Below are positions 4,213 through 63,765 of a stretch of 64,000 nt of DNA, one piece after another. Source of the stretch: Dendrobates tinctorius (lineage: Eukaryota); the NCBI RefSeq assembly GCF_039654945.1, contig NW_027361863.1:8308001-8372000 (forward strand). Reading direction: 5' to 3'. The notes beneath the pieces were generated by a model that had not been told where the DNA came from, did no database searches, and saw only the letters and a program-made list of their open reading frames with translations. The position numbers were made by a program, and so were the translations under genes. Within the stretch, counting starts at the first letter, position 1. The number at the start of each line of letters is the position of its first letter.

Positions 4213-5913
4213 TATGGTGTATACAGGGTCATACACATTGTGTGCGGTATATAGAGTGTAGAGTATGGTGTATACAGGGTCATACACATTGTGTGCGGTA
4301 TATAGAGTGTAGAGTATGGTGTATACAGGGTCATACACATTGTGTGCGGTATATAGAGTGTAGCGTATGGTGTATACAGGGTCACACACATTGTGTGCGG
4401 TATATAGAGTGTAGAGTATGGTGTATACAGGGTCACACACATTGTGTGCGGTATATAGAGTGTAGTGTATGGTGTATACAGGGTCACACACATTGTGTGC
4501 GGTATATAGAGTGTAGAGTATGGTGTATACAGGGTCACACACATTGTGTGCGGTATATAGAGTGGAGTGTATGGTGTATACAGGGTCATACACATTGTGT
4601 GCGGTATATAGAGTGTAGTGTATGGTGTATACAGGGTCATACACATTGTGTGCGGTATATAGAGTGTAGTGTATGGTGTATACAGGGTCACACACATTGT
4701 GTGCGGTATATAGAGTGTAGAGTATGGTGTATACAGGGTCACACACATTGTGTGCGGTATATAGAGTGGAGTGTATGGTGTATACAGGGTCATACACATT
4801 GTGTGCGGTATATAGAGTGTAGTGTATGGTGTATACAGGGTCATACACATTGTGTGCGGTATATAGAGTGTAGTGTATGGTGTATACAGGGTCATACACA
4901 TTGTGTGCGGTATATAGAGTGTAGTGTATGGTGTATACAGGGTCATACACATTGTGTGCGGTATATAGAGTGTAGTGTATGGTGTATACAGGGTCATACA
5001 CATTGTGTGCAGTATATAGAGTGTAGGGTATGGTGTATACAGGGTCATACACATTGTGTGCGGTATATAGAGTGTAGTGTATGGTGTATACAGGGTCATA
5101 CACATTGTGTGCGGTATATAGAGTGTAGTGTATGGTGTATACAGGGTCATACACATTGTGTGCGGTATATAGAGTGTAGTGTATGGTGTATACAGGGTCA
5201 TACACATTGTGTGCAGTATATAGAGTGTAGGGTATGGTGTATACAGGGTCATACACATTGTGTGCGGTATATAGAGTGTAGTGTATGGTGTATACAGGGT
5301 CATACACATTGTGTGCGGTATATAGAGTGTAGTGTATGGTGTATACAGGGTCATACACATTGTGTGCGGTATATAGAGTGTAGTGTATGGTGTATACAGG
5401 GTCATACACATTGTGTGCGGTATATAGAGTGTAGTGTATGGTGTATACAGGGTCATACACATTGTGTGCGGTATATAGAGTGTAGTGTATGGTGTATACA
5501 GGGTCATACACATTGTGTGCAGTATATAGAGTGTAGGGTATGGTGTATACAGGGTCATACACATTGTGTGCGGTATATAGAGTGTAGTGTATGGTGTATA
5601 CAGGGTCATACACATTGTGTGCGGTATATAGAGTGTAGTGTATGGTGTATACAGGGTCATACACATTGTGTGCGGTATATAGAGTGTAGTGTATGGTGTA
5701 TACAGGGTCATACACATTGTGTGCGGTATATAGAGTGGAGTGTATGGTGTATACAGGGTCATACACATTGTGTGCGGTATATAGAGTGTAGTGTATGGTG
5801 TATACAGGGTCATACACATTGTGTGCGGTATATAGAGTGTAGGGTATGGTGTATACAGGGTCATACACATTGTGTGCGGTATATAGAGTGTAGTGTATGG
5901 TGTATACAGGGTC
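4213..5913. repeat. 51-bp minisatellite, about 33 copies
   Basis: Unit GTATGGTGTATACAGGGTCATACACATTGTGTGCGGTATATAGAGTGTAGT; explains the 17-aa-periodic ORFs of 577-620 aa. Confidence 0.97.
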
Positions 5914-5919
5914 TGACAC

Positions 5920-6131
5920 ATCCAAATATTCCAGCACATCTTCTTACTTGAAAATAGAATCTTTATTGAGAAATCTTCATTAAAAATCCAAAAGCGGGAT
6001 ACAGGTTAAAAAACCATGGTGTCTGTCTTCACCATGGTTTTTTAACCTGTATCCTGCTTTTGGATTTTTAATGAAGATTTCTCAATAAAGATTCTATTTT
6101 CAAGTAAGAATATGTGCTGGAATATTTGGAT
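5920..6131. repeat. Near-perfect inverted repeat, 102-bp arms, 8-nt spacer
   Basis: 5920-6021 is the reverse complement of 6030-6131 with 2 mismatches; spacer TCTGTCTT. Confidence 0.93.
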
Positions 6132-10754: not shown

Positions 10755-11117
10755 ATTGTAGCGAGCCCTGCATTGTAGCGAGCCCTCCATTGTAGCGAGC
10801 CCTCCATTGTAGCGAGCCCTCCATTGTAGCGAGCCCTCCATTGTAGCGAGCCCTCCATTGTAGCGAGCCCTGCATTGTAGCGAGCCCTGCATTGTAGCGA
10901 GCCCTGCATTGTAGCGAGCCCTGCATTGTAGCGAGCCCTCCATTGTAGCGAGCCCTGCATTGTAGCGAGCCCTGCATTGTAGCGAGCCCTCCATTGTAGC
11001 GAGCCCTCCATTGTAGCGAGCCCTGCATTGTAGCGAGCCCTCCATTGTAGCGAGCCCTCCATTGTAGCGAGCCCTGCATTGTAGCGAGCCCTGCATTGTA
11101 GCGAGCCCTCCATTGTA
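10755..11117. repeat. 17-bp minisatellite, about 21 copies (CATTGTAGCGAGCCCT[C/G])
   Basis: Direct reading; two unit variants are interspersed. Confidence 0.95.
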
Positions 11118-14840: not shown

Positions 14841-15814
14841 ACAGGAACATGCATGTTCCTGTTGACGTCAACACTCTCCTGCAGATGGCGCTCTTGGGTC
14901 CAAACTAGGTTAGAGATTCAAGGGTCATTTACTAGCCACGGTCATCATCCTTCTGTGAATCGGGTCTCTATGACAAATCCTGGGACCAGTTGTCCATTCC
15001 CAGCACAGCTGTGTCCTGTAATAAAACCATTGAGCACTTAGGAAAGGTATTTATGACACAGGCCTGGGGTCAGTTGTCCCTTCCAGGCGCAAGTGAGATA
15101 AGTGTCACCATTACAATGGATGCATAAACACTAAAGATCAACCAGTTAATCCGGTTATGATCCATACTAACTAGTTGGCAGTCTCTTAGATGTTCTAGAC
15201 TTTTGGAGTAATACAATTTAATCACTGAACTATGGATGTTCCAGGCATTGCCCACGTGGGCATCCAGGAATGTAGGTATGATTGTAGTGTAAAGCTGCAG
15301 TACCCGACGCCGTGCATGGATGAGAGCGGCGCTGTGTATGGCAAGTGCCACTGCCTATCCATGTTTAGCGAGGGTCTTTCTGGTCGGACATCACTAATTA
15401 TGTTTATTGTAAAGGACGGGTCTCCCAGCTATTGGTGAAACTACAATTCCCAGCATGCCCACACTGTAGATGGTTGTGTGATAACAAGTGAGTTAACCCC
15501 AGAATGTACAGACCCCTTTAATGCAGGGTTGCATTAAATGCTCCACACTAGAATGACTCTGGAGCAGAGCTGTGTACGGTGCGCAGATCCTCCGTAGTCA
15601 GATCAGACGCACCTGGCCTTGGCAAAAGCAGAACTATTCAGATCATAGAATTGAAACCTTTATGTGGGCGGTGGATAGATTATATAGAACAGCTTTCTTC
15701 TATTTATTGCACAACATCTGGATGCAAATCTTGTTTTTTCTTTTTTTTTTTTTTGTGCTACTCTCCTCTTATTTCTTTGTTTCTCCCTTGCAGTGTCTGC
15801 CAGACTATTCCATC

Positions 15815-16134
15815 ATGGGCACGCCAGCTTCTGTGATCAGTACTCCTGTATCGGCATGGCAGGCCCCTGAACCACGGAGCAGGAAAAAGGCCTCCGCCAA
15901 CATTTTTAAAGACATTGATCTCCTGCAGATTCAGACGCTGCTCCGCACTGGCGGGGACGAGTGTGCCGACGAGCGGGCTCAGATCATCTACAACTATGCC
16001 GGAGACAGACGCATCGCAGAAGCTTTGATCAAGCTCCAAAGGAGGAAGAGGAGCAAGTGCTTTCATTCATCGCATCTGAAATTGAGCGGGGATGGAATTG
16101 GAGGACTGTCCGTGCAGAATTTCAGTAAACTTTG
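15815..16134 (+). CDS. AVPI1: Arginine vasopressin-induced protein 1, first coding exon (exon starts at 15794)
   Basis: MGTPASVISTPVSAWQAPEPRSRKKASANIFKDIDLLQIQTLLRTGGDECADERAQIIYNYAGDRRIAEALIKLQRRKR matches recalled AVPI1/TCIM-family motifs (MGTPASV, RKxASANIF, ERAQII). Pyrimidine tract + CAG acceptor at 15793; TG|GTAAGG donor, phase 2. Confidence 0.93.
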
Positions 16135-16227
16135 GTAAGGCTTCATTGCTGCCCATTGTAGTCTATGGTGGAGAGTGTGATCGTAAAAGAGCAACCAAAC
16201 ACATTCATTATCTGGACTAGTGGGGGG

Positions 16228-16493: not shown

Positions 16494-16821
16494 GTGGGGG
16501 GTTGTCACACTAGATCTGCCCCCTTGCTATAAGCCTTGTTAGGTTGTGTGGATTTCTTAGACGAGACTCGGTTTATCCCAGTATTGCATGGATGATATTG
16601 TATAGATGGGTGCAATATCTCCCTAATAATACAATCTGTTCTTGTAAACAGTGGCCTTATGGCAAGACTTGGAGGCAGAGAAGTGTTGTCATGAGGACTA
16701 TGTCCCGTCATTGTCAGCTTTCATTCTTTAACTTTTTTTTGCCCCCTTCTTTCAATAGTCATAACCTTATCCATTCTACATTCACATACTTTTGCCATAC
16801 ATGTGCTTTATTTGTTGCAAG

Positions 16822-18706
16822 TAGAGTTGAGCGATACCGTCCGATACTTCAAAGTATCGTATCGGATGGTATCGGCCGATCTTTAAAAAAAGTATCGGTA
16901 TCGCCGATTCCGATACCGGAAGTCCCATTCAAGTCTATGGGACTTCCGGTATCGGAATAAGAAAAACCCTTTCCTGCCCTTGTACAGCCTCTCTGGGGTC
17001 TGTACGGGCCTTTCGGGGGGCTGTGCCGGCCTGCCAGGGGGTCTGTGCAGGCTCCGGTGGTCTGTGCCGGCCTGCCGGTGGTCTGTGCCGGCCTGCCGGG
17101 GGGCTGTGCCGGCCTGCCGGGGGGCTGTGCCGGCCTGCCGGGGGGCTGTGCAGGCTCCGGGGGGCTGTGCCGGCCTGCGGGGAATTTCCCACGCAGCAAT
17201 GGCATAAAGTGAGACTAGGGACTTTTTTTTTTTTTAAGTGGCGGAGGAATACAGTGCGGAAGGATACCTACCTTCCGTCATTGGATTCCTGCAGCCCGTA
17301 GAGAACGGCAGCAACAGCTGATGCTGCAGTTCTCTACCCAAGATCGTCGTGGGACACACTCGTGGACTGCTTCGGATCGTGGGTGAGTATTTTTGTGGTT
17401 TGTTATGTTAATATTTATTCCGGAAAAGACAATGGCTTCGGGGAACAATGTGACAAGTATTGGTAAGTATGTTACTCTATGTTATATGTACTGTATGTCT
17501 ATGTATGTATTGTATGAATGTATTGTATGTATGTAGTATATATGTGGTATGTATGTAGCATGTAGTATGTATGTGGTATATATGTGGTATGCATGTAGCA
17601 TGTAGCATGCATGTAGCATGCAGTATGTATGTAGCATGCATGTAGTATATATGTAGTATGTATGTAGCATGTAGTATGTATGTAGCATGCATGTAGTATA
17701 TATGTAGTATGTATGTGGTATGTATGTGGCATGTAGTATGTATGTAGCATGCATGTAGTATGTATGTATGTAGTATGTATGTATGTATGTAGCATGTATG
17801 TAGCATGTATGTAGTATGTATGTAGTATGTAGCATGCATGTAGTATATATGTAGTATGTATGTAGTATGTATGTGGTATGTATGTAGCATGTAGTATGTA
17901 TGTAGCATGCATGTAGTATGTATGTAGCATGCATGTAGTATGTATGTAGCATGCAGTATGTAGTATATATGTAGTATGTATGTAGCATGTAGTATGTATG
18001 TAGCATGCATGTAGTATGTATGTAGTATTTTTTTTTTTTTTTTTTAACATTTAACACATTAGCCGGATGATGGGACTACTACTGTCCCATCATTGGCTAA
18101 TGTGTCAATCACTGTCATGGTAGCAGGCATCGCCCGATGGGACTTGTAGTCCCATCGGACGATGCTTGCACAGACCCCCGGCAGGCCGGCACAGCCCCCC
18201 GGCAGGCCGGTACAGACCCCCACAGGGTGCACAGACCACCGGCAGGCCAGCACAGCCCCCCGGCAGGCCGGTACAGACCCCCACAGGGTGCACAGACCAC
18301 CGGCAGGCCGGCACAGCCCCCCGGCAGGCCGGTACAGACCCCCACAGGGTGCACAGACCACCGGCAGGCCGGCACAGCCCCCCGGCAGGCCGGTACAGAC
18401 CCCCACAGGGTGCACAGACCACCGGCAGGCCGGCACAGCCCCCCGGCAGGCCGGTACAGACCCCGGGCAGGCCGGCACAGCCCCCCGGCAGGCCGGCAGA
18501 GACCCCCGGAAGGCCCGAAATGACGGCGCATCATGATGCGCACACACCGCGCATCATGATGACGTCAGTCTGTCAATCAACTTTGAACTTCCGATTCCGA
18601 TGCCGAATTCCGATTATTGAAAAATATCGGAAGTCGGTATCGGAATTCCGATACAGCAAGTATCGGCCGATACCCGATACTTGCGGTATCGGAATGCTCA
18701 ACACTA
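16822..18706. mobile_element. Non-autonomous hAT element (copy A; one-armed relative of 59639-62880)
   Basis: TIRs TAGAGTTGAGC / GCTCAACACTA, exact 8-bp TSD GTTGCAAG, subterminal GTATCGG/CCGATAC repeats, internal 21-bp GC repeats and a TAGYATG-like microsatellite (about 17490-18026). Confidence 0.92.
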
Positions 18707-18839
18707 GTTGCAAGATGAGTATTACAAATAAATTGCAAGATTGTCTTTGTAAAAAAAAAATGGTTTCGTTTCCCCATTTTCTGAGACTTGCAACTTCTTT
18801 ATTTTATCTTTCCAATCATAGACCTGTGTGAGGGCTTGT

Positions 18840-21800
18840 TTTCTCCTACGCCTCATTGGGGGACACAGAGACAGTGGGTGTTATGCTGCTGCCACTAGGA
18901 GGGCACTAAGCAAACCAGAAAAAAAGTTAGCTCCTCCCCTGCAGTATACACCCCGTCGCTGGATGAGATATCTCCAGTTCATGCTTAGTGTCTGTAGGAG
19001 GCACTTGGGTCCGGTTTCAGACCTCACAGGTTTTATTTTATTTTTGAGTTTTTCTGTAAATTTTTATTTTTTAATTAATGGAGTGAAGGGGGTGACGGTT
19101 TCTTTCTACAGCCTTTCTCCCCCGAACCAACAACAGGCAAGCACGTGGAGTAACCCTTCACGTACACTTTCCTGCGACGTTTGGGGCTGATTCCTCTAGC
19201 ATTGGCGATGATGCTTGCGTCCGGAGTCCGGTAATCCACGAATATGAGGGCAGGCGCACATAACGGAGAAGATTGGACAGCGCTTACGTAGGCCCTGAAT
19301 CAGCCCCATAGCTCTCCATCCCCCTATCATAGGGAGGATCGATTGAGCATGGCCCCTTTAAGAACTCCTCCAGCTCTGCTACATCAGCCCTGGAGAATGA
19401 GAGCCTGCATGGATGGCTGGACAGCGCTGAGCACTGGAGTAGAGGTATGGGGTCGGGTCCTGTCCCCCGGGAGAAGCGCTGATGTAGCATCAGCGGCGGT
19501 GCACCCCCTCCCTGGGCGCTACCACGGGTAGCCCAAAAAATTTAGTCCCCGGCTTTCCGGCCTGCTAGGCCGCAATTTAGCGCCTCCCCAGCCCGCCACC
19601 GGTGCCTTCCTCGGGTAGGCTCAAAAATCTAGCTCCCGGCTTTTCCAGCCTACTTGGCGGCAATTTGAATAGCGCCGCCCGCGCTATTGGCGCCTCTCAT
19701 CCTGCCGAGACGCGCAATCCTAGTCTCGGGGGCCATATCCTTTTACCTCAGCCTGCTCTGGATACGAGCAGTGAGGGGAGCATTCTGCCAGATACCGGGT
19801 GACACCGCAGGGCCACCGCCATTCCTCCCGGGGGGCACAGCATAGGACCGGGTAAGCTGCATCTGCCCTCAGATTAAAGCTTAACCCCTTCCCGGCACGT
19901 TACATGCAGCAGACTGCCGTTAACCCTTTCAGGAGCACTATGTCTCAATCTAAGGAAGCAAAACGGGCTGCTAAAAAGCACACTGCGTTTTTTACCGTGT
20001 GTACCTCTTGCAAGTCTTCCTAGTGCACAGACTAATCCGTTATGCACTGACTGCGACCCGGCCTGCGCCCAATCGCCCCTCGCCACCGCTGCTGACGGGT
20101 CTCCTGCTTTTAATACCCCTGAGTGGGCTGTGTCCCTGTCACGGTCGGTGGAGTCTCTGACCGAGGCTATATTCTTCCTCCGGGAGGGCTCTTTAAGTCA
20201 GAAGGCATCCTTACCCCCCGAGGAAGGCTCTGGCGTCGAACGGGAACCATCCACCAGCAGGGGCCATACTCGTTCAAGGGATGGTTGGGGCTCTAGAAAG
20301 CGGACCCATGACGCTTCCCCCTAGCCCCGTTCGCGCCTTTGTATCTGCGACTCCTGTCTCTCCCTCTCCCTCTCCTGGAGTTCTCAGCGAGCACAACTTT
20401 GAATTTGATTCTGACACGTCTGCCCCTCAGAATCCCCCAACTGATCAAGAGTCGCTTGATTCTCTTATAGAATCAGTTAACAGGATTCTGAAGTTGGATG
20501 AGGATAATGTTCCTGCTCCAGCACATCCTATTTCACTTAAGAAAACCAAGCGAATGCGCAGGTTATTTACCAGCCATCCAGACTTTAAGGAAGTTGTCCA
20601 GCAACATAGGGATCGTCCGCATAAGCGGTTCACAGGGCAAAAGTCTACTCAGGCTAAATTCCCTTTTGATCCAGACCTAATGAATGGTTACAGTCGCCTC
20701 CGGTGGACCGCCTGTATCGCGTCTGGCTTCAAAAACGCTTCTGTCCATGTCTGAGGGTTCCTCGATCCGAAACCCCTCCGATCGTCAGATTGACTACCTT
20801 GCCCGTTTCGTTTTTGAAGCTTCAGGAGCAGCGCTTTTTCCATCTTTCGCGGCAGTTTGGGTCATGAAAGCAATGGCCGCTTGGGCATAGGTCTTGATTA
20901 CTTCCTTCCAGGGCACTAATCTTCCTCCGGAAGCCACCACGGTCGCCAGGCAGATAATTCACGCAGCGGACTTCGTAGTGGACGCCTCTTTGGACGCCAC
21001 CAATTGCGCTGCTCAAACTGCCGCTAACGCGATCTCCATTAGAAGAGCCCTATGGCTCCACGACTGGCGGGCGGATGCCGGATCTAAAAGATCCTTGACT
21101 TCTCTCCCCTTTCAAACAGGTCGTCTTTTTGGAGAGAAACTAGATAAGCCCATTTCTGATGCAACCGGGGGGAAAAGTAAATTCCTCCCTCAACAAAAAG
21201 CTGCTCGGCCGTTTCGCAACCAACAGGCGACGTGCTTTCGTTCCTTTCGCAACCAACAGGCGACGTGCTTTCGTTCCTTTCGCAACAACTCCGGTTGGTC
21301 ATCCTCTACCTTCTCTAACGGATCAGGTCCGTCTCCGCGCGGAGACCGAGGCTCCCAGGTCTCGTACAGACCTAACCGCCCTTGGAAACCCAGACCTAGG
21401 GCTTCTGGTTCCAAGGAAGCCAGGTCTCATAGATCTATCCAATGACTTGTTGCGGTATCCAGCGGACGCCGACAAAGTAGGCGGTCGCCTACTTTCCTTC
21501 AGCCACACCTGGCTCGCGGTCGTCCACGGCAAATGGGTCAGAGAGCTGGTGTCCTCCGGATACAAAATAGAGGTCTTCGCTCCCCCCTCCAACTCGCTTT
21601 TTCCCTTCCTTTCCGCCCAAGGGAATGACAAGAGCCTTCCTTCGGGCTGTTCAGGCCCTCTTAAGGGACGGAGTCATCATTCCGATCCCGCATCACGAGA
21701 GGTTCACAGGATTTTATTCAAACCTTTTTGTGGTTCCAAAGGACGGCACGATGCGTCCATTCTGGATCTCAAACTGTTAAATCAGTTTGTCACGATTCGG

Positions 21801-22056
21801 CGATTCCGAATGGAATCTCTCCGGTCAGTGGTCTCTTCCATGGAAAAAGGAGAGTTCCTAGCATCCATTGACATCAAGGACGCTTACCTTCACATTCTGA
21901 TCTGCCCGTCTCACCAGCAGTTCCTGCGTTTTGCAATTCACGAGGAACACTTCCAGTTCGTGGCCTTGCCCTTCGGACTCGCCACTGCCCCCAGGGTCTT
22001 AACCAAGGTCATGGCGGCAGTCATGGCCATTCTCCACTCTCGGGGAGTTGTGGTGG
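18840..22056 (+). mobile_element. DIRS-type (tyrosine recombinase) retrotransposon, 3'-truncated and decayed
   Basis: Terminus TTTCTCCTACG..CATTGGGGGACACAG; frameshifted gag-like ORF1 from ATG 19940 with CxxC...CxxC; overlapping RT frame VGGRL..F...W and ILDLK.LN.F....FRMESL...SIDIKDAYLHI...QFVALPFGLATAPRV, which stops just before the YLDD motif. Confidence 0.88.
21445..22056 (+). pseudogene. DIRS reverse transcriptase fragment
   Basis: The C-terminal half of ORF 21159..22112 has RT motifs (DIKDAY, LPFGLATAP). It has a frameshift near 21590-21750 and is truncated before YLDD. Confidence 0.85.
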
Positions 22057-22301
22057 TGGCCAAAAAACAGCAATTCTGTCTGTTTTGTTTTTACATACAT
22101 TTACCTCTCTGAGTTCTTAATTTCATATTTGGATATTGTAGATTTTTTTTTCCCCCAATGTGGTAAAACAGAATACATCAACACTTTTATTCTTTTGAAT
22201 TTCGGATTGAGAAAAGGGCAGGGATTCCAACTTTTATTTACATTTTTACTTTAGAAAAAAAAAGCCTCCCCTTTGAGCCCTTGTACCTATGATTTAGGTC
22301 T

Positions 22302-23878
22302 CAGACCAAAAGTTTGGACACACCTCATTCAAAGAGTTTTCTTAATTCATGAAAATAAACACATGTGGAATTATATAATTAACAAAAAAGTGTGAAACAA
22401 CTGAAAATGTCTTATATTCTAGGTTCTTCAAAGTAACCACCTTTTGCTTTGATTACTGCTTTGCACACTCTTGGCATTCTCTTGATGAGCTCTTGAAGGT
22501 AGTCACCGGAAATGGTTTTCACTTCACATGTATGCCCTGTCAGGTTTAATAAGTGGGATTTCTTGCCTTATAAATGGGATTGGGACCATCAGTTGTGTTA
22601 TGCAGAAGTCTGGTGGATACACAGCTGATAGTCCTACTGAATAGACTGTTAGTTGCTTTTTTCTTGCCATAATACAAATTCTAAGTAAAGAAAAACGAGT
22701 GGCCATCATTACTTTAAGAAATGAAGTTGTCAGTCAGAAAAATTGGGAAAACTTTGAAAGTGTCCCCAAATGCAGTGGCAAAAACCATCAAGCGCTACAA
22801 AGAAACTGGCTCACATGAGGACCGCCCCAGGAAAGGAATACCAAGAGTCACCTCTGCTGCGGAGGATAAGTTCATCTGAGTCACCAGCATCAGAAATCGC
22901 AGGTTAACAGCAGCTCAGATTAGAGACCAGGTCAATGCCACACAGAGTTCTAGCAGCAGACACATCTCTGTAACAACTGTTAAGAGGAGACTTTGTGCAG
23001 CAGGCCTTCATGGTAAAATAGCTGCTAGGAAACCACTGCTAAGAACAGGCAACAAGCAGAAGAGACTTGTTTGGGCTAGAGAACACAAGGAATGGACATT
23101 AGACCAGGGGAAATCTGTGCTTTGGTCTGATGAGTCCAAATTTGAGATCTTTGGTTCCAACCACCGTGTCTTTGTGCGACGCAGAAAAGGTGAACAGATG
23201 GACTCTACATGCCTGGTTCCCACCGTGAAGCATGGAGGAGGAGGTGTGATGGTGTGTGGGGGGGGGGGGGGGGGGGGCTTTGCTGGTGACACTGTTGGGG
23301 ATTTATTCAAAATTGAAGGCATACTGCACCAACATGGCTACCACAGCATCTTGCAGCGGCATGCTATTCCACCCGGTTTGCGTTTAGTTGGACCATCATT
23401 TATTTTTCAACAGGACAATGACCCCAAACACACCTCCAGGCTGTGTAAGGGCTATTTGACCAAGAAGGAGAGTGATGGGGTGCTACGCCAGATGACCTGG
23501 CCATCACAGTCACCAGACCTGAACCCAATCGAGATGGTTTGGGGTGAGCTGGACCGCAGAGTGAAGGCAAAAGGGCCAACAAGTGCTAAGCATCTCTGGG
23601 AACTCCTTCAAGACTGTTGGAAGACCATTTCCGGTGACTACCTCTTGAAGCTCATCAAGAGTGTGCAAAGCAGTAATCAAAGCAAAAGGTGGCTACTTTG
23701 ATGAACCTAGAATATAAGACATTTTCAGTTGTTTCACACTTTTTTGTTAATTATATAATTCCACATGTGTTGGTTCATAGTTTTGATGCCTTCAGAGTGA
23801 ATCTACAATTTTCATAGTCATGAAAATAAAGAAAACTCTTCGAATGAGGTGGTGTGGCCAAACTTTTGGTTTGTACTG
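22302..23878 (+). mobile_element. Tc1-like transposon, DD38E type, defective
   Basis: Long TIRs (about 22302-22471 and 23657-23878), TA at the right end, transposase motifs WSDESKF, FQQDNDPKH and WPSQSPDLNPIE. It has a frameshift at about 22735, an in-frame TGA at about 22878 and a poly-G expansion at about 23258-23277. Confidence 0.92.
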
Positions 23879-37545: not shown

Positions 37546-38040
37546 ACGATTCTGTGCCGTGCCAGCAGCGAGACTACGGATTCTGTGCCGTGCCAGCAGC
37601 GAGACTACGGATTCTGTGCCGTGCCAGCAGCGAGACTACGGATTCTGTGCCGTGCCAGCAGCGAGACTACGGATTCTGTGCCGTGCAAGCAGCGAGACTA
37701 CGGATTCTGTGCCGTGCAAGCAGCGAGACTACGGATTCTGTGCCGTGCAAGCAGCGAGACTATGGATTCTTTACTGTACAAGCAGCGAGACTATGGATTC
37801 TTTACTGTACAAGCAGCGAGACTATGGATTCTTTACTGTACAAGCAGCGAGACTATGGATTCTTTACTGTACAAGCAGCGAGACTATGGATTCTTTACCG
37901 TACAATACAAGCAGCGAGACTATGGATTCTTTACTGTACAAGCAGCGAGACTATGGATTCTTTACTGTACAAGCAGCGAGACTATGGATTCTTTACTGTA
38001 CAAGCAGCGAGACTATGGATTCTTTACTGTAAGAGCAGTG
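37546..38040. repeat. 31-bp minisatellite, about 16 copies, polar variant gradient
   Basis: Units change from GCAGCGAGACTACGGATTCTGTGCCGTGCCA to GCAGCGAGACTATGGATTCTTTACTGTACAA. Confidence 0.93.
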
Positions 38041-38252
38041 AAACTATGGCACCCTGTCACATGATTTTGCAATGGGTGATTCACTACAGATGTACAAAGA
38101 GGGCTTGGAAGCCTTTCTTTAAAAATATATTACAGGTTATGGGCACTAGATTGGGATTTACTGATTCAGGGAACAGGTCTGATTGCCATATGAGTCAGAA
38201 AGGATTTTTTCCCCTAATATGGAGCTTTTGGTGTCAGCCAAATGGGGATTAC

Positions 38253-40179: not shown

Positions 40180-41465
40180 CAATGAAAGTCCTGCTGCTCG
40201 GCTCTACACCGTACCCGCCCACACAATGAAAGTCCTGCTGCTCGGCTCTGCACCGCACCCACCCAAACAATGAAAGTCCCGCTGCTCGGATCTACACCGT
40301 ACCCACCAGAACAATGAAAGTCCCGCTGCTCGGATCTACACCGTACCCACCAGAACAATGAAAGTCCTGCTGCTCGGCTCTACACCGTACCCGCCCACAC
40401 AATGAAAGTCCTGCTGCTCGGCTCTACACCATACCCACCCAAACAATGAAAGTCCTGCTGCTCGGCTCTGCACCGCACCCACCCAAACAATGAAAGTCCC
40501 GCTGCTCGGATCTACACCGTACCCACCAGAACAATGAAAGTCCTGCTGCTCGGCTCTACACCGTACCCACCAGAACAATGAAAGTCCTGCTGCTCGGCTC
40601 TACACCGTACCCGCCCACACAATGAAAGTCCTGCTGCTCGGCTCTACACCGTACCCGCCCACACAATGAAAGTCCTGCTGCTCGGCTCTGCACCGCACCC
40701 ACCCAAACAATGAAAGTCCCGCTGCTCGGATCTACACTGTACTCACCAGAACAATGAAAGTCCCGCTGCTCGGCTCTACACCATACCCGCCCACACAATG
40801 AAAGTCCTGCTGCTCGGCTCTACACCGTACCCGCCCACACAATGAAAGTCCTGCTGCTCGGCTCTGCACCGCACCCACCCAAACAATGAAAGTCCCGCTG
40901 CTCGGATCTACACTGTACTCACCCGAACAATGAAAGTCCCGCTGCTCGGATCTACACCGTACCCACCAGAACAATGAAAGTCCTGCTGCTCGGCTCTACA
41001 CCGTACCCGCCCACACAATGAAAGTCCTGCTGCTCGGCTCTACACCATACCCACCCAAACAATGAAAGTCCTGCTGCTCGGATCTACACCGTACCCACCT
41101 GAACAATGAAAGTCCCGCTGCTCGGATCTACACTGTACTCACCCGAACAATGAAAGTCCTGCTGCTTGGTTCTACACCGTGCCCACCCACATAATGAAAA
41201 CCCTGCTGCTCGGCTCTACACCGCACCCACCCAAACAATAAAACTCCTCCTGCTTGGCTCTACACCGTACCCGCCCGAACAATGAAAGTCCTGCTGCTCA
41301 GCTCTACATTGTACCCACGCATACAATGAAAGTCCTGCTGCTAGGCTCTACACCGTACCCACCCAAACAATGAATGTCCTGTTGCTCGGCTCTACACCAT
41401 ACCCACCAGAACAATGATAGTCCTGCTGCTTGGCTCTACACCGTACCCGCCCATACAATGAAAGT
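40180..41465. repeat. 44-bp minisatellite, about 29 copies
   Basis: Unit ACAATGAAAGTCCTGCTGCTCGGCTCTACACCGTACCCGCCCAC with recurring variant blocks. Confidence 0.95.
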
Positions 41466-51054: not shown

Positions 51055-53579
<2,525 letters not shown>

Positions 53580-53726: not shown

Positions 53727-56440
53727 CTGCTGCCGCCCTAGTGTCTGTGCCGCTGCTGCTGCCGCCCTAGTGTCTGTGCCGCTGCTGCTGCCGCCCTAGT
53801 GTCTTTGCCGCTGCTGCTGCCGCCCTAGTGTCTGTGCCGCTGCTGCTGCCGCCCTAGTGTCTGTGCCGCTGCTGCTGCCGCCCTAGTGTCTGTGCCGCTG
53901 CTGCTGCCGCCCTAGTGTCTGTGCCGCTGCTGCTGCCGCCCTAGTGTCTGTGCCGCTGCTGCTGCCGCCCTAGTGTCTGTGCCGCTGCTGCTGCCGCCCT
54001 AGTGTCTGTGCCGCTGCTGCTGCCGTCCTAGTGTCTGTGCCGCTGCTGCTGCCGCCCTAGTGTCTGTGCCGCTGCTGCTGCCGCCCTAGTGTCTGTGCCG
54101 CTGCTGCTGCCGCCCTAGTGTCTGTGCCGCTGCTGCTGCCGCCCTAGTGTCTGTGCCGCTGCTGCTGCCGCCCTAGTGTCTGTGCCGCTGCTGCTGCCGC
54201 CCTAGTGTCTGTGCCGCTGCTGCTGCCGCCCTAGTGTCTGTGCCGCTGCTGCTGCCGCCCTAGTGTCTGTGCCGCTGCTGCTGCCGCCCTAGTGTCTGTG
54301 CCGCTGCTGCTGCCGCCCTAGTGTCTGTGCCGCTGCTGCTGCCCTAGTGTCTGTGCCGCTGCTGCTGCCCTAGTGTCTGTGCCGCTGCTGCTGCCCTAGT
54401 GTCTGTGCCGCTGCCGTCCTAGTGTCTGTGCCGCTGCTGCTGCCCTAGTGTCTGTGCCGCTGCCGTCCTAGTGTCTGTGCCGCTGCTGCTGCCCTAGTGT
54501 CTGTGCCGCTGCTGCCCTAGTGTCTGTGCCGCTGCTGCCCTAGTGTCTGTGCCGCTGCTGCCCTAGTGTCTGTGCCGCTGCCGTCCTAGTGTCTGTGCCG
54601 CTGCTGCTGCCCTAGTGTCTGTGCCGCTGCCCTAGTGTCTGTGCCGCTGCTGCTGCCCTAGTGTCTGTGCCGCTGCTGCTGCCGCCCTAGTGTCTGTGCC
54701 GCTGCTGCTGCCGCCCTAGTGTCTGTGCCGCTGCCCTAGTGTCTGTGCCGCTGCTGCCGCCCTAGTGTCTGTGCCGCTGCTGCTGCCGCCCTAGTGTCTG
54801 TGCCGCTGCTGCTGCCGCCCTAGTGTCTGTGCCGCTGCTGCTGCCGCCCTAGTGTCTGTGCCGCTGCTGCTGCCGCCCTAGTGTCTGTGCCGCTGCTGCT
54901 GCCGCCCTAGTGTCTGTGCCGCTGCTGCTGCCGCCCTAGTGTCTGTGCCGCTGCTGCTGCCGCCCTAGTGTCTGTGCCGCTGCTGCTGCCGCCCTAGTGT
55001 CTGTGCCGCTGCTGCTGCCGCCCTAGTGTCTGTGCCGCTGCTGCTGCCGCCCTAGTGTCTGTGCCGCTGCTGCTGCCGCCCTAGTGTCTGTGCCGCTGCT
55101 GCTGCCGCCCTAGTGTCTGTGCCGCTGCTGCTGCCGCCCTAGTGTCTGTGCCGCTGCTGCTGCCCTAGTGTCTGTGCCGCTGCTGCTGCCCTAGTGTCTG
55201 TGCCGCTGCTGCTGCCCTAGTGTCTGTGCCGCTGCTGCTGCCCTAGTGTCTGTGCCGCTGCCGTCCTAGTGTCTGTGCCGCTGCTGCTGCCCTAGTGTCT
55301 GTGCCGCTGCCGTCCTAGTGTCTGTGCCGCTGCTGCTGCCCTAGTGTCTGTGCCGCTGCTGCCCTAGTGTCTGTGCCGCTGCTGCCCTAGTGTCTGTGCC
55401 GCTGCTGCCCTAGTGTCTGTGCCGCTGCTGCCCTAGTGTCTGTGCCGCTGCCGTCCTAGTGTCTGTGCCGCTGCTGCTGCCCTAGTGTCTGTGCCGCTGC
55501 CCTAGTGTCTGTGCCGCTGCTGCTGCCCTAGTGTCTGTGCCGCTGCTGCTGCCCTAGTGTCTGTGCCGCTGCTGCTGCCCTAGTGTCTGTGCCGCTGCTG
55601 CTGCCCTAGTGTCTGTGCCGCTGCTGCTGCCCTAGTGTCTGTGCCGCTGCTGCTGCCCTAGTGTCTGTGCCGCTGCCGTCCTAGTGTCTGTGCCGCTGCT
55701 GCTGCCGCCCTAGTGTCTGTGCCGCTGCTGCTGCTGCCCTAGTGTCTGTGCCGCTGCTGCTGCCCTAGTGTCTGTGCCGCTGCTGCTGCCCTAGTGTCTG
55801 TGCCGCTGCTGCTGCCCTAGTGTCTGTGCCGCTGCTGCTGCCCTAGTGTCTGTGCCGCTGCTGCTGCCCTAGTGTCTGTGCCGCTGCTGCTGCCCTAGTG
55901 TCTGTGCCGCTGCTGCCGCCCTAGTGTCTGTGCCGCTGCTGCCGCCCTAGTGTCTGTGCCGCTGCCGCCGCCCTAGTGTCTGTGCCGCTGCCGCCGCCCT
56001 AGTGTCTGTGCCGCTGCCGCCGCCCTAGTGTCTGTGCCGCCGCCCTAGTGTCTGTGCCGCCGCCCTAGTGTCTGTGCCGCCGCCCTAGTGTCTGTGCCGC
56101 CGCCCTAGTGTCTGTGCTGCCGCCCTAGTGTCTGTGCCGCTGCTGCCGCCCTAGTGTCTGTGCCGCTGCTGCCGCCCTAGTGTCTGTGCCGCTGCTGCCG
56201 CCCTAGTGTCTGTGCCGCTGCTGCCGCCCTAGTGTCTGTGCCGCTGCTGCCGCCCTAGTGTCTGTGCCGCTGCTGCCGCCCTAGTGTCTGTGCCGCTGCC
56301 GCCGCCCTAGTGTCTGTGCCGCCGCCCTAGTGTCTGTGCCGCCGCCCTAGTGTCTGTGCTGCCGCCCTAGTGTCTGTGCCGCTGCTGCCGCCCTAGTGTC
56401 TGTGCCGCTGCTGCCTGTGTGTCTGTGCTGCCGCTGCCCA
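53727..56440. repeat. About 2.7-kb minisatellite, 20-32-bp units CCTAGTGTCTGTGCC(GCT)n(GCC)m, about 100 copies
   Basis: Direct reading; unit length varies in 3-bp steps. Confidence 0.96.
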
Positions 56441-59269: not shown

Positions 59270-62200
59270 TGACTATGGAATGGAGGATATGTATGATGAG
59301 TATATGGGCACCGGACTATGGGATGGAGGATATGTACGATGGGTATATGGGCACGGGACTATGGGATGGAGGATGTATGATGGGTATATGGGAACGGGAC
59401 TATGGGATGGAGGATATGTATGATGGGTATATGGGCAAGGGACTATGGGATGGAGGATATGTATGACGGGTATATGGGAACGGGACTATGGGATGGAGGA
59501 TATGTATGATGGGTATATGGGAACGGGACTATGGAATGGAGGATGTGTATGATGGGTATATGGGAACGGGACTATGGAATGGAGGATGTATGACGGGTAT
59601 ATGGGAACGGGACTATGGGATGGAGGATGTGTGATGGGTAGAGTTGAGCGATACCGTCCGATACTTCAAAGTATCGTATCGGATGGTATCGGCCGATCTT
59701 TAAAAAAAGTATCGGTATCGCCGATTCCGATACCGGAAGTCCCATTCAAGTCTATGGGACTTCCGGTATCGGAATAAGAAAAACCCTTTCCTGCCCTTGT
59801 ACAGCCTCTCTGGGGTCTGTACGGGCCTTTCGGGGGGCTGTGCCGGCCTGCCAGGGGGTCTGTGCAGCCTCCGGTGGTCTGTGCCGGCCTGCCGGGGGGC
59901 TGTGCCGGCCTGCCGGGGGGCTGTGCCGGCTCCGGGGGGCTGTGCCGGCCTGCCGGGGGGCTGTGCCGGCCTGCCGGTGGTCTGTGCAGGCTCCGGGGGT
60001 CTGTGCAGGCATCGTCCGATGGGACTACAAGTCCCATCGGGCGATGCCTGCTACCATGACAGTGATTGACACATTAGCCAATGATGGGACAGTAGTAGTC
60101 CCATCATCCGGCTAATGTGTTAAATGTAAAAAAAAAAAAAAAAAAAATTACATGCTGCATACTACATACATGCTACATTCATACTACATACTACATACAT
60201 GCTACATTCATACTACATGCAACATACATACTACATATATACTACATGCATGCTACATACATACTGCATGCTACATACATACCACATATATACTACATAC
60301 ATGCTACATGCATGCTACATGCTACATACATAACACATATATACTACATGCATGCTACATACATACTACATGCTACATACTACATATATACTACATGCAT
60401 GCTACATACTACATGCTACATACATACTACATATATACTACATGCATGCTACATACATACTGCATGCTACATGCATGCTACATACATACTACATACATAC
60501 TACATACATACTACATGCTACATACATTCTACATATATACTACATACATACTACATGCATGCTACATGCATGCTACATACATACCACATACATAACACAT
60601 ATATACTACATGCATGCTACATACATACTACATGCTACATACATACCATATACATACTACATGCATGCTACATACATACTACATGCATACTACATGCTAC
60701 ATACATACTACATATACTACATGCATGCTACATACATGCTACATACATACTACATGCATGCTACATACATACTACATGCTACATACATACTACATATATA
60801 CTACATGCATGCTACATACATACTGCATGCTACATGCATGCTACATACATACTACATACATACTACATGCTACATACATACCACATATATACTACATACA
60901 TACAATACATACATAGACATACAGTACATATAACATAGAGTAACATACTTACCAATACTTGTCACATTGTTCCCCGAAGCCATTGTCTTTCCGGAATAAA
61001 TATTAACATAACAAACCACAAAAATACTCACCCACGATCCGAAGCAGTCCACGAGTGTGTCCCACGACGATCTTGGGTAGAGAACGGCAGCATCAGATGA
61101 TGCTGCCGTTCTCTACGGGCTGCAGGAATCCAATGACGGAAGGTAGGTATCCTTCCGCACTGTATTCCTCCGCCACTTAAAAAAAAAAAAAAAAGTCCCT
61201 AGTCTCACTTTATGCCATTGCTGTGTGGGAAATTCCCACGCAGCAATGGCATAAAGTGAGACTAGGGACTTTTTTTTTTTTAAGTGGCGGAGGAATACAG
61301 TGCGGAAGGATACCTACCTTCCGTCATTGGATTCCTGCAGCCCGTAGAGAACGGCAGCAACAGCTGATGCTGCAGTTCTCTACCCAAGATCGTCGTGGGA
61401 CACACTCGTGGACTGCTTCGGATCGTGGGTGAGTATTTTTGTGGTTTGTTATGTTAATATTTATTCCGGAAAGACAATGGCTTCGGGGAACAATGTGACA
61501 AGTATTGGTAAGTATGTTACTCTATGTTATATGTACTGTATGTCTATGTATGTATTGTATGAATGTATTGTATGTATGTAGTATATATGTGGTATGTATG
61601 TAGCATGTAGTATGTATGTAGTATGTATGTAGCATGCATGTAGCATGTATGTAGCATGCATGTAGTATATATGTAGTATGTATGTAGCATGCATGTAGTA
61701 TATATGTAGCATGTATGTAGTATGTATGTGGTATGTATGTAGCATGTAGTATGTATGTAGCATGTATGTAGCATGTAGTATGTATGTAGCATTCATGTAG
61801 TATGTATGTAGTATGTATGTAGCATGTAGTATGTATATAGTATGTATGTGGTATGTATGTAGCATGTAGTATGTATGTAGCATGCATGTAGTATATATGT
61901 AGTATGTATGTGGTATGTATGTAGCATGTAGTATGTATGTAGCATGCATGTAGTATATATGTAGTATGTAGTATGTATGGTATGTATGTAGCATGTAGTA
62001 TGCATGTAGTATGTATGTAGCATGCATGTAGTATGTATGTAGTATGTATGTAGTATGTATGTAGCATGCAGTATGTATGTAGCATGTATGTAGTATGTAT
62101 GTAGTATATATGTAGTATGTATGTAGCATGTAGTATGTATGTAGCATGCATGTAGTATGTATGTAGTATGTATGTAGCATGTATGTAGTATGTATGTAGC

Positions 62201-63416
62201 ATGCATGTAGTATGTATGTAGCATGTAGTATGTATGTAGCATGTATGTAGTATATATGTAGTATGTATGTAGCATGTAGCATGCATGTAGTATGTATGTA
62301 GTATTTTTTTTTTTTTTTTTTTAACATTTAACACATTAGCCGGATGATGGGACTACTACTGTCCCATCATTGGCTAATGTGTCAATCACTGTCATGGTAG
62401 CAGGCATCGCCCGATGGGACTTGTAGTCCCATCGGACGATGCTTGCACAGACCCCCGGACATCAGCACAGCCCCCCGGCAGGCCGGCACAGCCCCCCGGC
62501 AGGCCGGCACAGCCCCCCGGCAGGCCGGTACAGACCCCCACAGGGTGCACAGACCACCGGCAGGCCGGCACAGCCCCCCGGCAGGCCGGCAGAGACCCCG
62601 GGCAGTCCACACAGCCCCCCGGCAGGCCGGCACAGCCCCCCGGCAGGCCGGCACAGCCCCCCGGCAGGCCGGCAGAGACCCCCGGAAGGCCCGAAATGAC
62701 GGCGCATCATGATGCGCACACACCGCGCATCATGATGACGTCAGGCCGTCAATCAACTGAACTTCCGATTCCGATGCCGAATTCCGATATTGAAAAAATA
62801 TCGGAAGTCGGTATCGGAATTCCGATACAGCAAGTATCGGCCGATACCCGATACTTGCGGTATCGGAATGCTCAACACTAGTGATGGGTATATGGGCACT
62901 CGACTATGGGATGGCGAATATGTATGATGGTTATATGGGCATGGGACTATGGGATGGCGAATATGTATGATGGTTATATGGGCATGGGACTATGGGATGG
63001 AGCATGTGTGATGGGTATATGGGCACGGGTCTATGGGATGGAGGATGTGTGATGGGTATATGGGCACTCCACTATGGGATGGAGGATATGTATGATGGGT
63101 GTATGGGCACGGGCCTATGGGATGGAGGATGTGTGATAGGTATATGGGCATGGGACTATGGGATGGAGGATGGGTATATGGGCACGGGACTATGAGATGA
63201 AGGATGTGTGATGGGTATATGGGCACTGGACTATGGGATGGCGGATATGTATGATGGGTATATGGGCACTCGACTATGGGATGGCGAATATGTATGATGG
63301 GTATATGGGCACTCGACTATGGGATGGAGGATGTGTGATGGGTATATGGGCACGGGACTATGGGATGGTGGATATGTATGATGGGTATATGGGCACAGGA
63401 CTATGGGATGGAGGAT
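59270..63416. repeat. 41-43-bp G-rich minisatellite (59270-59638 and 62881-63416), split by the hAT insertion
   Basis: Unit ATGGGTATATGGGCACGGGACTATGGGATGGAGGATATGTATG occurs on both sides of the insertion. Confidence 0.93.
59639..62880. mobile_element. Non-autonomous hAT element (copy B) with giant internal palindrome
   Basis: Same TIRs and subterminal sequence as 16822-18706; exact 8-bp TSD GTGATGGG; inverted arms centred on base 61232. Confidence 0.93.
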
Positions 63417-63765
63417 AATTAGTTACTATGCCCGGGCAGCGCCGGGCTCTTCAGCTAGTATTATATAAAAAGCGAGCAAAATATGGAAAAACGCCCTAAA
63501 ATATTATCAATAAAAACGACACTATTTTTTTTAACAAATTAAATTCTTTTCATTACTTAAAAATAATATACAAGTACGGTATCATCGTAACCGTTAACAA
63601 CCTGTAGAATCGTGTTGTCAGATCATATTCACTGCCCCCCCCCCATAAAATCAGAACCCAAAAAACAATTATGAATTGATATTTTGAGGGTTCTGTTTTG
63701 TTTTAGACATTTTACTGCAATACATCATGTGACTGCCCTCACCACCCCAATCAGCAAAAATAAAC

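Follow-up and report, generated by a model that had tools for sequence, protein, structure and literature searches.

How does a palindrome of 2.4 to 2.9 kb with a spacer of a single base come to lie inside a mobile element, and was it made where it is now found or carried there ready-made? In bacteria, yeast, and mammalian cells, a perfect palindrome only a few hundred bases long is already fragile. The question is raised by a stretch of 64,000 nucleotides of the Dendrobates tinctorius genome (NCBI RefSeq assembly GCF_039654945.1, contig NW_027361863.1, positions 8,308,001 to 8,372,000 of the forward strand), which we call the window and whose first base is position 1 in all coordinates below. 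The sequence at 59639-62880 is very probably a non-autonomous, gene-less cut-and-paste element of the hAT type with an inherited internal palindrome. It has two arms, and the window also holds a sibling copy that has one. The feature is real, and the pairing of a one-armed and a two-armed copy in one window is new here.

The two-armed element is 3242 bp long and is flanked by a perfect 8-bp target site duplication (TSD), GTGATGGG, at 59631-59638 on the left and 62881-62888 on the right. Its host sequence is a 43-bp satellite. Excision in silico of the element together with one TSD restores the phase of this satellite, so the TSD is a product of insertion and not an effect of the satellite. A first-pass annotation of the window had assumed a host intron, an assumption for which we find no support: the element sits in satellite, and the sole gene-like open reading frame (ORF) found in the window, a TCIM-like one, is 43 kb away. 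The same annotation had described a hAT element with a perfect 8-bp TSD and short terminal inverted repeats (TIRs), and this description stands. The TIRs, of 11 bp, read TAGAGTTGAGC (59639-59649) and TAGTGTTGAGC (reverse complement of 62870-62880) and match at 10 of 11 positions. Within the window their pattern occurs solely at the ends of the two copies, where it is the same in both.

The left end of the two-armed element (59639-59811, + strand) comprises the TIR, six TATCGG/CCGATA hexamers, and a hairpin with a 22-bp stem at 59724-59775; the right end (62692-62880, + strand) comprises eight such hexamers, hairpins, and the TIR at 62870-62880. In all, 27 of the 34 TATCGG/CCGATA hexamers in the window fall inside the four element ends, which together make up about 730 bp. 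Beyond the TIR and short motifs, blastn found no match between the left end (173 bp) and the right end (189 bp). The right end also carries a perfect TGACGTCA, a palindrome resembling the cAMP response element (CRE), at 62736-62743, which adjoins two copies of GCGCATCATGATG; the sibling has TGACGTCA too.

We assign the element to hAT because of its 8-bp TSD, its ends, and its subterminal motifs. The TSD has the 8-bp length of the hAT superfamily and is perfect in both copies. The target-site preference of hAT elements is nTnnnnAn, and T is found at position 2 in both TSDs and A at position 7 in one of the two. Short TIRs of about 10 to 25 bp that open with (C/T)AG(A/T)G are likewise a hAT trait, and the ends of the two-armed element begin TAGAG and TAGTG, of the general form TAG(A/T)G. 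Subterminal repeated motifs are transposase-binding sites in Ac/Ds, Tol2, and other elements; short subterminal motifs in both orientations are present here and would be candidate binding sites.

The annotation had also called the element non-coding, and the protein and RNA family searches agree. The seven ORFs of the two-armed element had no family match in Pfam, and no hAT domain was found in the ORFs scanned, namely these seven and 10 longer ones from the window, which amounts to less than a full six-frame scan. Rfam returned sub-threshold matches to microRNA-precursor models at the center and in the nested hairpins; we rejected these, as any perfect hairpin yields such matches.

Between the two ends lies the palindrome. 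In blastn, 59812-61231 aligns with 62640-61233 at 88.5% identity over 1447 columns, leaving a single central base, an A, at 61232, about which the sequence is symmetric for 49 bp on either side except for one mismatch at +/-8. The single-base spacer thus stood as first described. The extent needs one correction, toward the upper of the two figures first given, since the symmetry runs on through the 21-mer arrays to about 62691, and with the arrays included the palindrome measures about 2.9 kb. Each arm has the module order that had been claimed for it, namely, from the outside in, a GC-rich 21-mer array, two nested hairpins, poly(A/T), about 0.77 kb of microsatellite, and a unique core of 307 bp. 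On the left (all modules on the + strand), these are the GC-rich array at 59812-60004, with about 9.7 units that are 72% identical to the inverted right array and 90% identical to the left array of the sibling; the hairpin block at 60005-60147, with two nested hairpins that have ATGGGAC/GTCCCAT arms and with poly(A) at 60128-60147; the microsatellite at 60149-60924, with the 11-nt base unit CATACTACATA, higher-order periods of 29/51, and 83% identity to the right tract; and the unique core at 60925-61231. On the right, also on the + strand, come the unique core at 61233-61540, the microsatellite at 61541-62304, the poly(T) at 62304-62322 with the right hairpin block (62304-62446 together), and the GC-rich array of about 11 units at 62447-62691.

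As the annotation had it, the unique parts of the arms are nearly identical while the microsatellites have diverged in unit order. Compared arm against arm, the cores (60925-61231 and 61233-61540) differ by four substitutions and by 4 nt in the length of a poly(A/T) run, the hairpin block and poly(A) are about 99% identical, the microsatellites (776 and 764 bp) are 83% identical with unit order changed, and the GC-rich 21-mer arrays are about 71% identical. The palindrome is cargo of the element and not a pair of long TIRs. Computed folds bear out the earlier expectation of a hairpin of kilobase length: the two-armed form as a single strand, whether DNA or RNA, is predicted to fold into a hairpin of about 1.3 kb. 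The central 616 nt as single-stranded DNA reach -388 kcal/mol, against -70 +/- 5 for shuffles (z = -63), and the predicted fold of the whole element reaches -2603 kcal/mol, with 1311 of 1465 pairs spanning the center. Within the core lies a smaller hairpin whose 18-bp stem is perfect in the left arm (61077-61116, -22.0 kcal/mol) and has two mismatches in the right arm (61344-61383) and in the sibling (17298-17337), at -15.2 kcal/mol; one rare left-arm change restores a G-C pair in this stem.

The sibling was found by blast of the element modules against the window. It occupies 16822-18706 on the + strand (1885 bp) and has its own perfect 8-bp TSD, GTTGCAAG, at 16814-16821 on the left and 18707-18714 on the right, in keeping with the family's having been called mobile in the first pass. 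A census of two-armed and one-armed copies, which had been proposed as a check, gives one of each within the window. The sibling consists of a left end, a left 21-mer array (16995-17182), a junction, a core (17186-17495), microsatellite, poly(T), a hairpin block (18043-18169), a right 21-mer array (18170-18515), and a right end (18516-18706). It therefore has the right arm and, of the left arm, only the outermost part, a 21-mer array that is collinear with that of the two-armed copy. The termini are common to both copies, with no difference over the 173 positions of the left end and 97% identity in the right end. The right ends, 62692-62880 and 18516-18706, differ at about 6 positions in 190, while the left ends (173 bp) and the unique parts of the right arm (433 bp) are without substitutions; such a mosaic suggests that members of the family have recombined or that templates were switched. 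In the sibling, the right 21-mer array has grown to 346 bp, against 245 bp in the two-armed copy, through a 61-bp higher-order unit that is present in 5.7 copies with 95% identity.

At the junction of the sibling (17173-17196, + strand), the final 21-mer unit leads into CTGCG-GGGAA / T / TTCCC-A-CGCAG. This 10-bp remnant of the mirror symmetry contains one bulge and is located where the two-armed copy has its center. The central base, A in the two-armed copy, is T in the sibling. In two-armed coordinates, the segment missing from the sibling runs from about 59996 to 61220-61229, or about 1.23 kb; its inner breakpoint lies 2 to 12 bp from the center of symmetry, its outer one falls within the 21-mer unit that directly precedes the hairpin block, and the presumed deletion would have been joined at a microhomology of 3 to 5 nt. 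A 118-amino-acid ORF across this junction had no match in a collection of 5.8 billion proteins, which evidently lacks the ORFs of frog repeats.

A wider view of the family comes from 24 sequencing runs, all in the form of assembled contigs; in the four runs that were aligned to window positions 16500-17500, the contigs are 65 to 490 nt long. The element or part of it is present in 20 of the 24 runs, from nine studies. Sixteen of these runs bear one species label, and the four others, from three other species, contain 7 to 11% of the sampled element words; one contig of another species links 21-mer units to the hairpin block. In the run labeled X1, 10,996 contigs fall on 0.68 kb of the element, with a summed word depth of 0.4 to 3 million compared with 0 to 4.65 on the flank. 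Summed word depth is not copy number, and the ratio of core to left-end depth, at about 1, is unusable as a ratio of copies. Identity to the aligned copy varies among contigs between 90% and more than 99%. These figures show a highly abundant and diverse family. A metagenome scan with a 36-nt pattern for the center and right core gave zero matches, and a search of the literature, which did not extend to Dfam or Repbase, turned up no description of a hAT family with such an architecture. In the D. tinctorius genome paper, hAT elements make up 3.9% of the assembly and unclassified repeats 39%, and no mention is made of palindromic or foldback elements (PMC11152451).

Whether the palindrome was made at this locus can be judged from the three arms that the two copies provide. 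The sibling's single arm and the right arm of the two-armed copy have no substitutions between them over about 433 unique bases (core plus hairpin block), their sole difference there being the length of two homopolymers; the zero count holds for the right core against 17186-17495. The left arm differs from both at six positions (61224, 61100, 61097, 61086, 60128, and 60008). On two equally old branches, a split of six to zero has a one-sided binomial p of about 0.016, a value that assumes a left arm made from this right arm once the two elements had separated. By its substitutions, the sibling's arm belongs to the right-arm lineage. Since the single arm matches the right arm and the left arm differs at six sites, the comparison suggests that the palindrome was inherited and not made here; the element would already have been two-armed on insertion, its left arm not copied from its right at this locus. 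The first-pass word "young," if taken to mean a palindrome recently formed at the locus, is not supported, as the comparison argues that the arms were distinct before the two copies separated. Nor is arm-to-arm homogenization seen in this pair, because the arms within the element are less alike than the same arm is across the elements. The microsatellites of the three arms share only scattered exact blocks of up to 100 nt in changed order and are uninformative on direction.

Alleles in the wider family bear on the same question. The left-arm allele at 61100, a T (sibling position 17314), makes up 73% of the summed depth in X1 and 55% in the run X5, and the A of the right arm and the sibling makes up 27% and 45%. 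The left-arm allele is therefore not a new mutation of that arm, since the family majority carries it. Moreover, in X15, a run from another study, one contig carries a left end, 21-mer units, and a hairpin block with G, the allele of the left arm, and another carries a right end, 21-mer units, and a hairpin block with A, the allele of the right arm. This linkage repeats the left/right pairing of 60008 and 62443 in the two-armed copy.

These results also bear on the direction of change between the two copies. The one-armed copy is probably an internal-deletion derivative of a two-armed element. A deletion is favored because the sibling keeps remnants of the left arm from both its outer part (the 21-mer array) and its innermost part (a mirror of 10 nt), because its arm groups with right arms, and because it shares with the two-armed copy both polymorphic left-end alleles and the minority allele at 17314. 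A predominance of right-arm-only copies would, moreover, sit poorly with the share of the right-arm allele at 17314, which is under half of the depth across the family.

The element could be moved solely in trans, by a transposase that would recognize the 11-bp TIRs and the TATCGG-rich subterminal regions. Under the deletion reading, an arm could be lost by two routes. In one, an extruded hairpin or cruciform would break at its tip, followed by one-sided resection and end joining. In the other, gap repair after excision would be aborted when the two new strands stall at the center and the hairpin block, the right-side strand at the center and the left-side one at the first hairpin, and the two would be joined by GGG or CTGC microhomology. 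Abortive gap repair after excision is the usual source of internally deleted DNA transposons. By analogy, a breakpoint 2 to 12 bp from the center would be what palindrome biology predicts. Spacerless inverted repeats extrude hairpins or cruciforms, are cut at or near the tip, and are stabilized by asymmetric deletion; this center-break revision, reported for mammalian cells (Cunningham et al. 2003, cited in PMC3300023), is matched here by the position of the one-armed breakpoint. It is not matched in what was lost, a whole arm here rather than a central segment, and on that comparison abortive gap repair explains the outcome equally well.

Several points weigh against our interpretation of the element and its sibling. 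No transposase partner was identified, so the putative hAT membership rests on TSD, ends, and motifs. Of the four covered left-arm differences, three (at 17193, 17317, and 17328 of the sibling) have family frequencies under 10% and may be private to this arm rather than old and arm-specific. The comparison is one of two copies, and because the microsatellites of all three arms are mutually rearranged, those copies are not simply parent and offspring. The contigs do not show the structure of this particular locus, and where they run through 21-mer arrays, contigs from a De Bruijn graph may in principle represent collapsed paths. The change of the central base between A and T needs an extra step in either direction. 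Finally, both presumed deletion breakpoints fall on module boundaries, which a one-armed ancestor with snap-back synthesis explains equally well.

That last possibility takes the one-armed form as ancestral and the sibling as a surviving member of the one-armed lineage. A nascent strand would copy the right arm as far as GGGAA/TTCCC, fold back, copy itself outward, and re-anneal in the left 21-mer array, whose orientation is from the outset inverse to that of the right array. Both boundaries of the extra 1.23 kb fit such an event, in the form of a short inverted repeat at 17180-17190 and the inverted homologous 21-mer arrays, and the three left-arm differences that are rare in the family could fit error-prone synthesis; some event of this kind must, moreover, once have created the palindrome. 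As an account of this pair, however, we consider it unlikely. With no substitutions between the single arm and the right arm, and six in the left arm, the sibling falls within the right-arm lineage, at a point later than the divergence of the two arms. At 61100 the left arm has the allele that is most common in the family and, at 60008, the one linked to the left end in X15, while the right-arm A at 17314 is below half of the summed depth in both X1 and X5. Snap-back also predicts T as the central base of the + strand, where A is observed.

A further reading, which is compatible with inheritance of the palindrome and later loss of an arm, is that the palindrome is kept for a function: extrusion might pair the ends, so that a 3.2-kb element transposes like a short miniature inverted-repeat transposable element (MITE), or read-through hairpin RNA might give rise to small RNAs against the family. 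In favor of this, the family has reached very high abundance despite the instability of long palindromes, and the predicted fold of the whole element pairs one arm with the other. X15 and X16, which are guessed to be RNA although none of the 24 runs is on record as such, contain 37 to 50% of the sampled element words, and inverted duplications of Ac and MuDR make silencing double-stranded RNA in maize (bioRxiv 10.1101/2020.01.07.897926). Against this, a one-armed copy with intact ends and TSD exists, so the palindrome is not obviously required, and the arms have not been kept identical in the two-armed copy. A functional palindrome is, in our estimate, decidedly improbable.

Palindromic chimeras are a known artifact of long-read libraries, and a fold-back chimeric read or a mis-join could in that way have made the left arm, the runs being contigs that carry no read-level data at this locus. 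We regard this as very improbable indeed. On either side of the palindrome stand different ends that do not mirror each other, with a perfect TSD around them; the arms, which a fold-back read would make identical, differ by six substitutions and in microsatellite unit order; and a contig from another study joins the left end to the left-type hairpin block. An insertion of one copy inverted inside another, as in maize double-Ds, can mimic a palindrome by setting copies head to head, but it is scarcely credible here and was rejected: the TIR pattern stands at the outer ends only, the two-armed element has no internal TIR, end region, or TSD of the kind that marks double-Ds, and the center of symmetry is a single base inside unique core.

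The element can be set beside several known systems. With non-autonomous hAT elements, such as Ds-type derivatives and hAT MITEs, it shares the 8-bp TSD, short TIRs of the form (C/T)AG(A/T)G, subterminal motifs, the lack of a transposase, and high copy number. Faulty gap repair is the accepted origin of internally rearranged non-autonomous hAT derivatives, and abortive gap repair is reportedly discussed for hAT MITEs in PMC7385995. The family has the non-coding character, high copy number, and TSD of a MITE, but at 3242 bp, or 1885 bp in the one-armed form, it exceeds the usual size of less than 800 bp. Unlike hAT MITEs, which are shorter than 0.8 kb, the 3.2-kb two-armed element is about 90% a nearly spacerless palindrome of 21-mers, hairpins, and microsatellite.

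Foldback elements, among them Drosophila FB, Galileo of the P superfamily, and the Mutator/Foldback element Tm1, are described in PMC4168063, PMC3688188, and PMC3169594 as having long tandem-repeat arms, little or no spacer, and many gene-less copies. The first-pass label of foldback-like is apt in that the arms here are likewise tandem repeats, a 21-mer array and a 0.77-kb microsatellite, about a spacer of 1 nt. It fails in that the long inverted repeats of foldback elements reach the termini, whereas here they are internal to different ends of 173 and 189 bp with a TIR of 11 bp. The TSD, moreover, is 7 bp in Galileo and 9 bp in FB, whereas both copies here have 8 bp.

A third likeness is to Mu killer and the maize "Ac killer," which are also kilobase-scale inverted duplications tied to a DNA transposon (2 to 4 kb in the killers). 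Such killer duplications can be transcribed into long hairpin RNA, and the Ac case concerns the hAT superfamily (bioRxiv 10.1101/2020.01.07.897926). The killers are single immobile loci with transposase-gene sequence and proven silencing, whereas the palindrome described here is the non-coding cargo of a mobile, high-copy element and is known from sequence alone.

The rest of the window is rich in repeats. The TCIM-like ORF at 15572-16138 (+ strand) matches Pfam PF15063, "Thyroid cancer protein 1" (TCIM/C8orf4-like), over the full domain with an E value of 4.5e-23. The one-armed copy starts about 0.7 kb downstream of its stop, and an AATAAA follows the insertion at about 18727; the insertion possibly lies in or just after the 3' untranslated region of this ORF. 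The 43-bp satellite that hosts the two-armed copy occupies 59271-59640 and 62881-63417 and has a higher-order period of 127. Its unit contains GGGACTATGGGA, which is similar to the ATGGGAC/GTCCCAT arms of the element's three nested hairpins. The region from 48 to 56 kb, with 58 to 64% GC, is repeat and not a CpG island, because two GC-rich arrays at 51055-52302 and 53727-56415 (a 47-mer in 27 copies at 99% identity and a 29-mer in 103 copies) account for its GC content; GTCTGTGCCG is common to the 29-mer array and the element's 21-mer. Other tandem arrays, at 4213-5921, 10755-11117, 37548-38049, and 40180-41465, have units of 51 nt (33 copies, 98%), 17 nt (21 copies), 31 nt (16 copies), and 44 nt (29 copies). 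Fragments of mobile elements lie in 20894-23701, comprising an ORF with a LAP2alpha-like domain (20894-21445), a reverse transcriptase (21159-22112, below the Pfam cut-off), and a Tc1-type DDE_3 domain (23117-23701).

What these results describe is a mobile family, very abundant in a vertebrate genome, that appears to have as its standard form a palindrome of 2.4 to 2.9 kb with a one-base spacer. The pair of an intact copy and one that has lost an arm, with its breakpoint at the center of symmetry, opens the origin, tolerance, and collapse of such palindromes, and the further transposition of collapsed forms, to testing. The finding is relevant to annotation in an assembly of which about 39% is unclassified repeat (PMC11152451), and also to the question of whether such elements seed long double-stranded RNA. 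It is conceivable, if quite unlikely in our view, that a hAT lineage propagates a kilobase-scale spacerless palindrome as a design. Extrusion would then unite the ends and give a 3-kb element a MITE-like efficiency, one-armed and two-armed forms would interconvert by hairpin-directed breakage and by snap-back in gap repair, and read-through transcripts would feed a silencing loop based on hairpin RNA. Were this true, the family would be a natural, high-copy vertebrate system for the survival and breakage of long palindromes in the germline.

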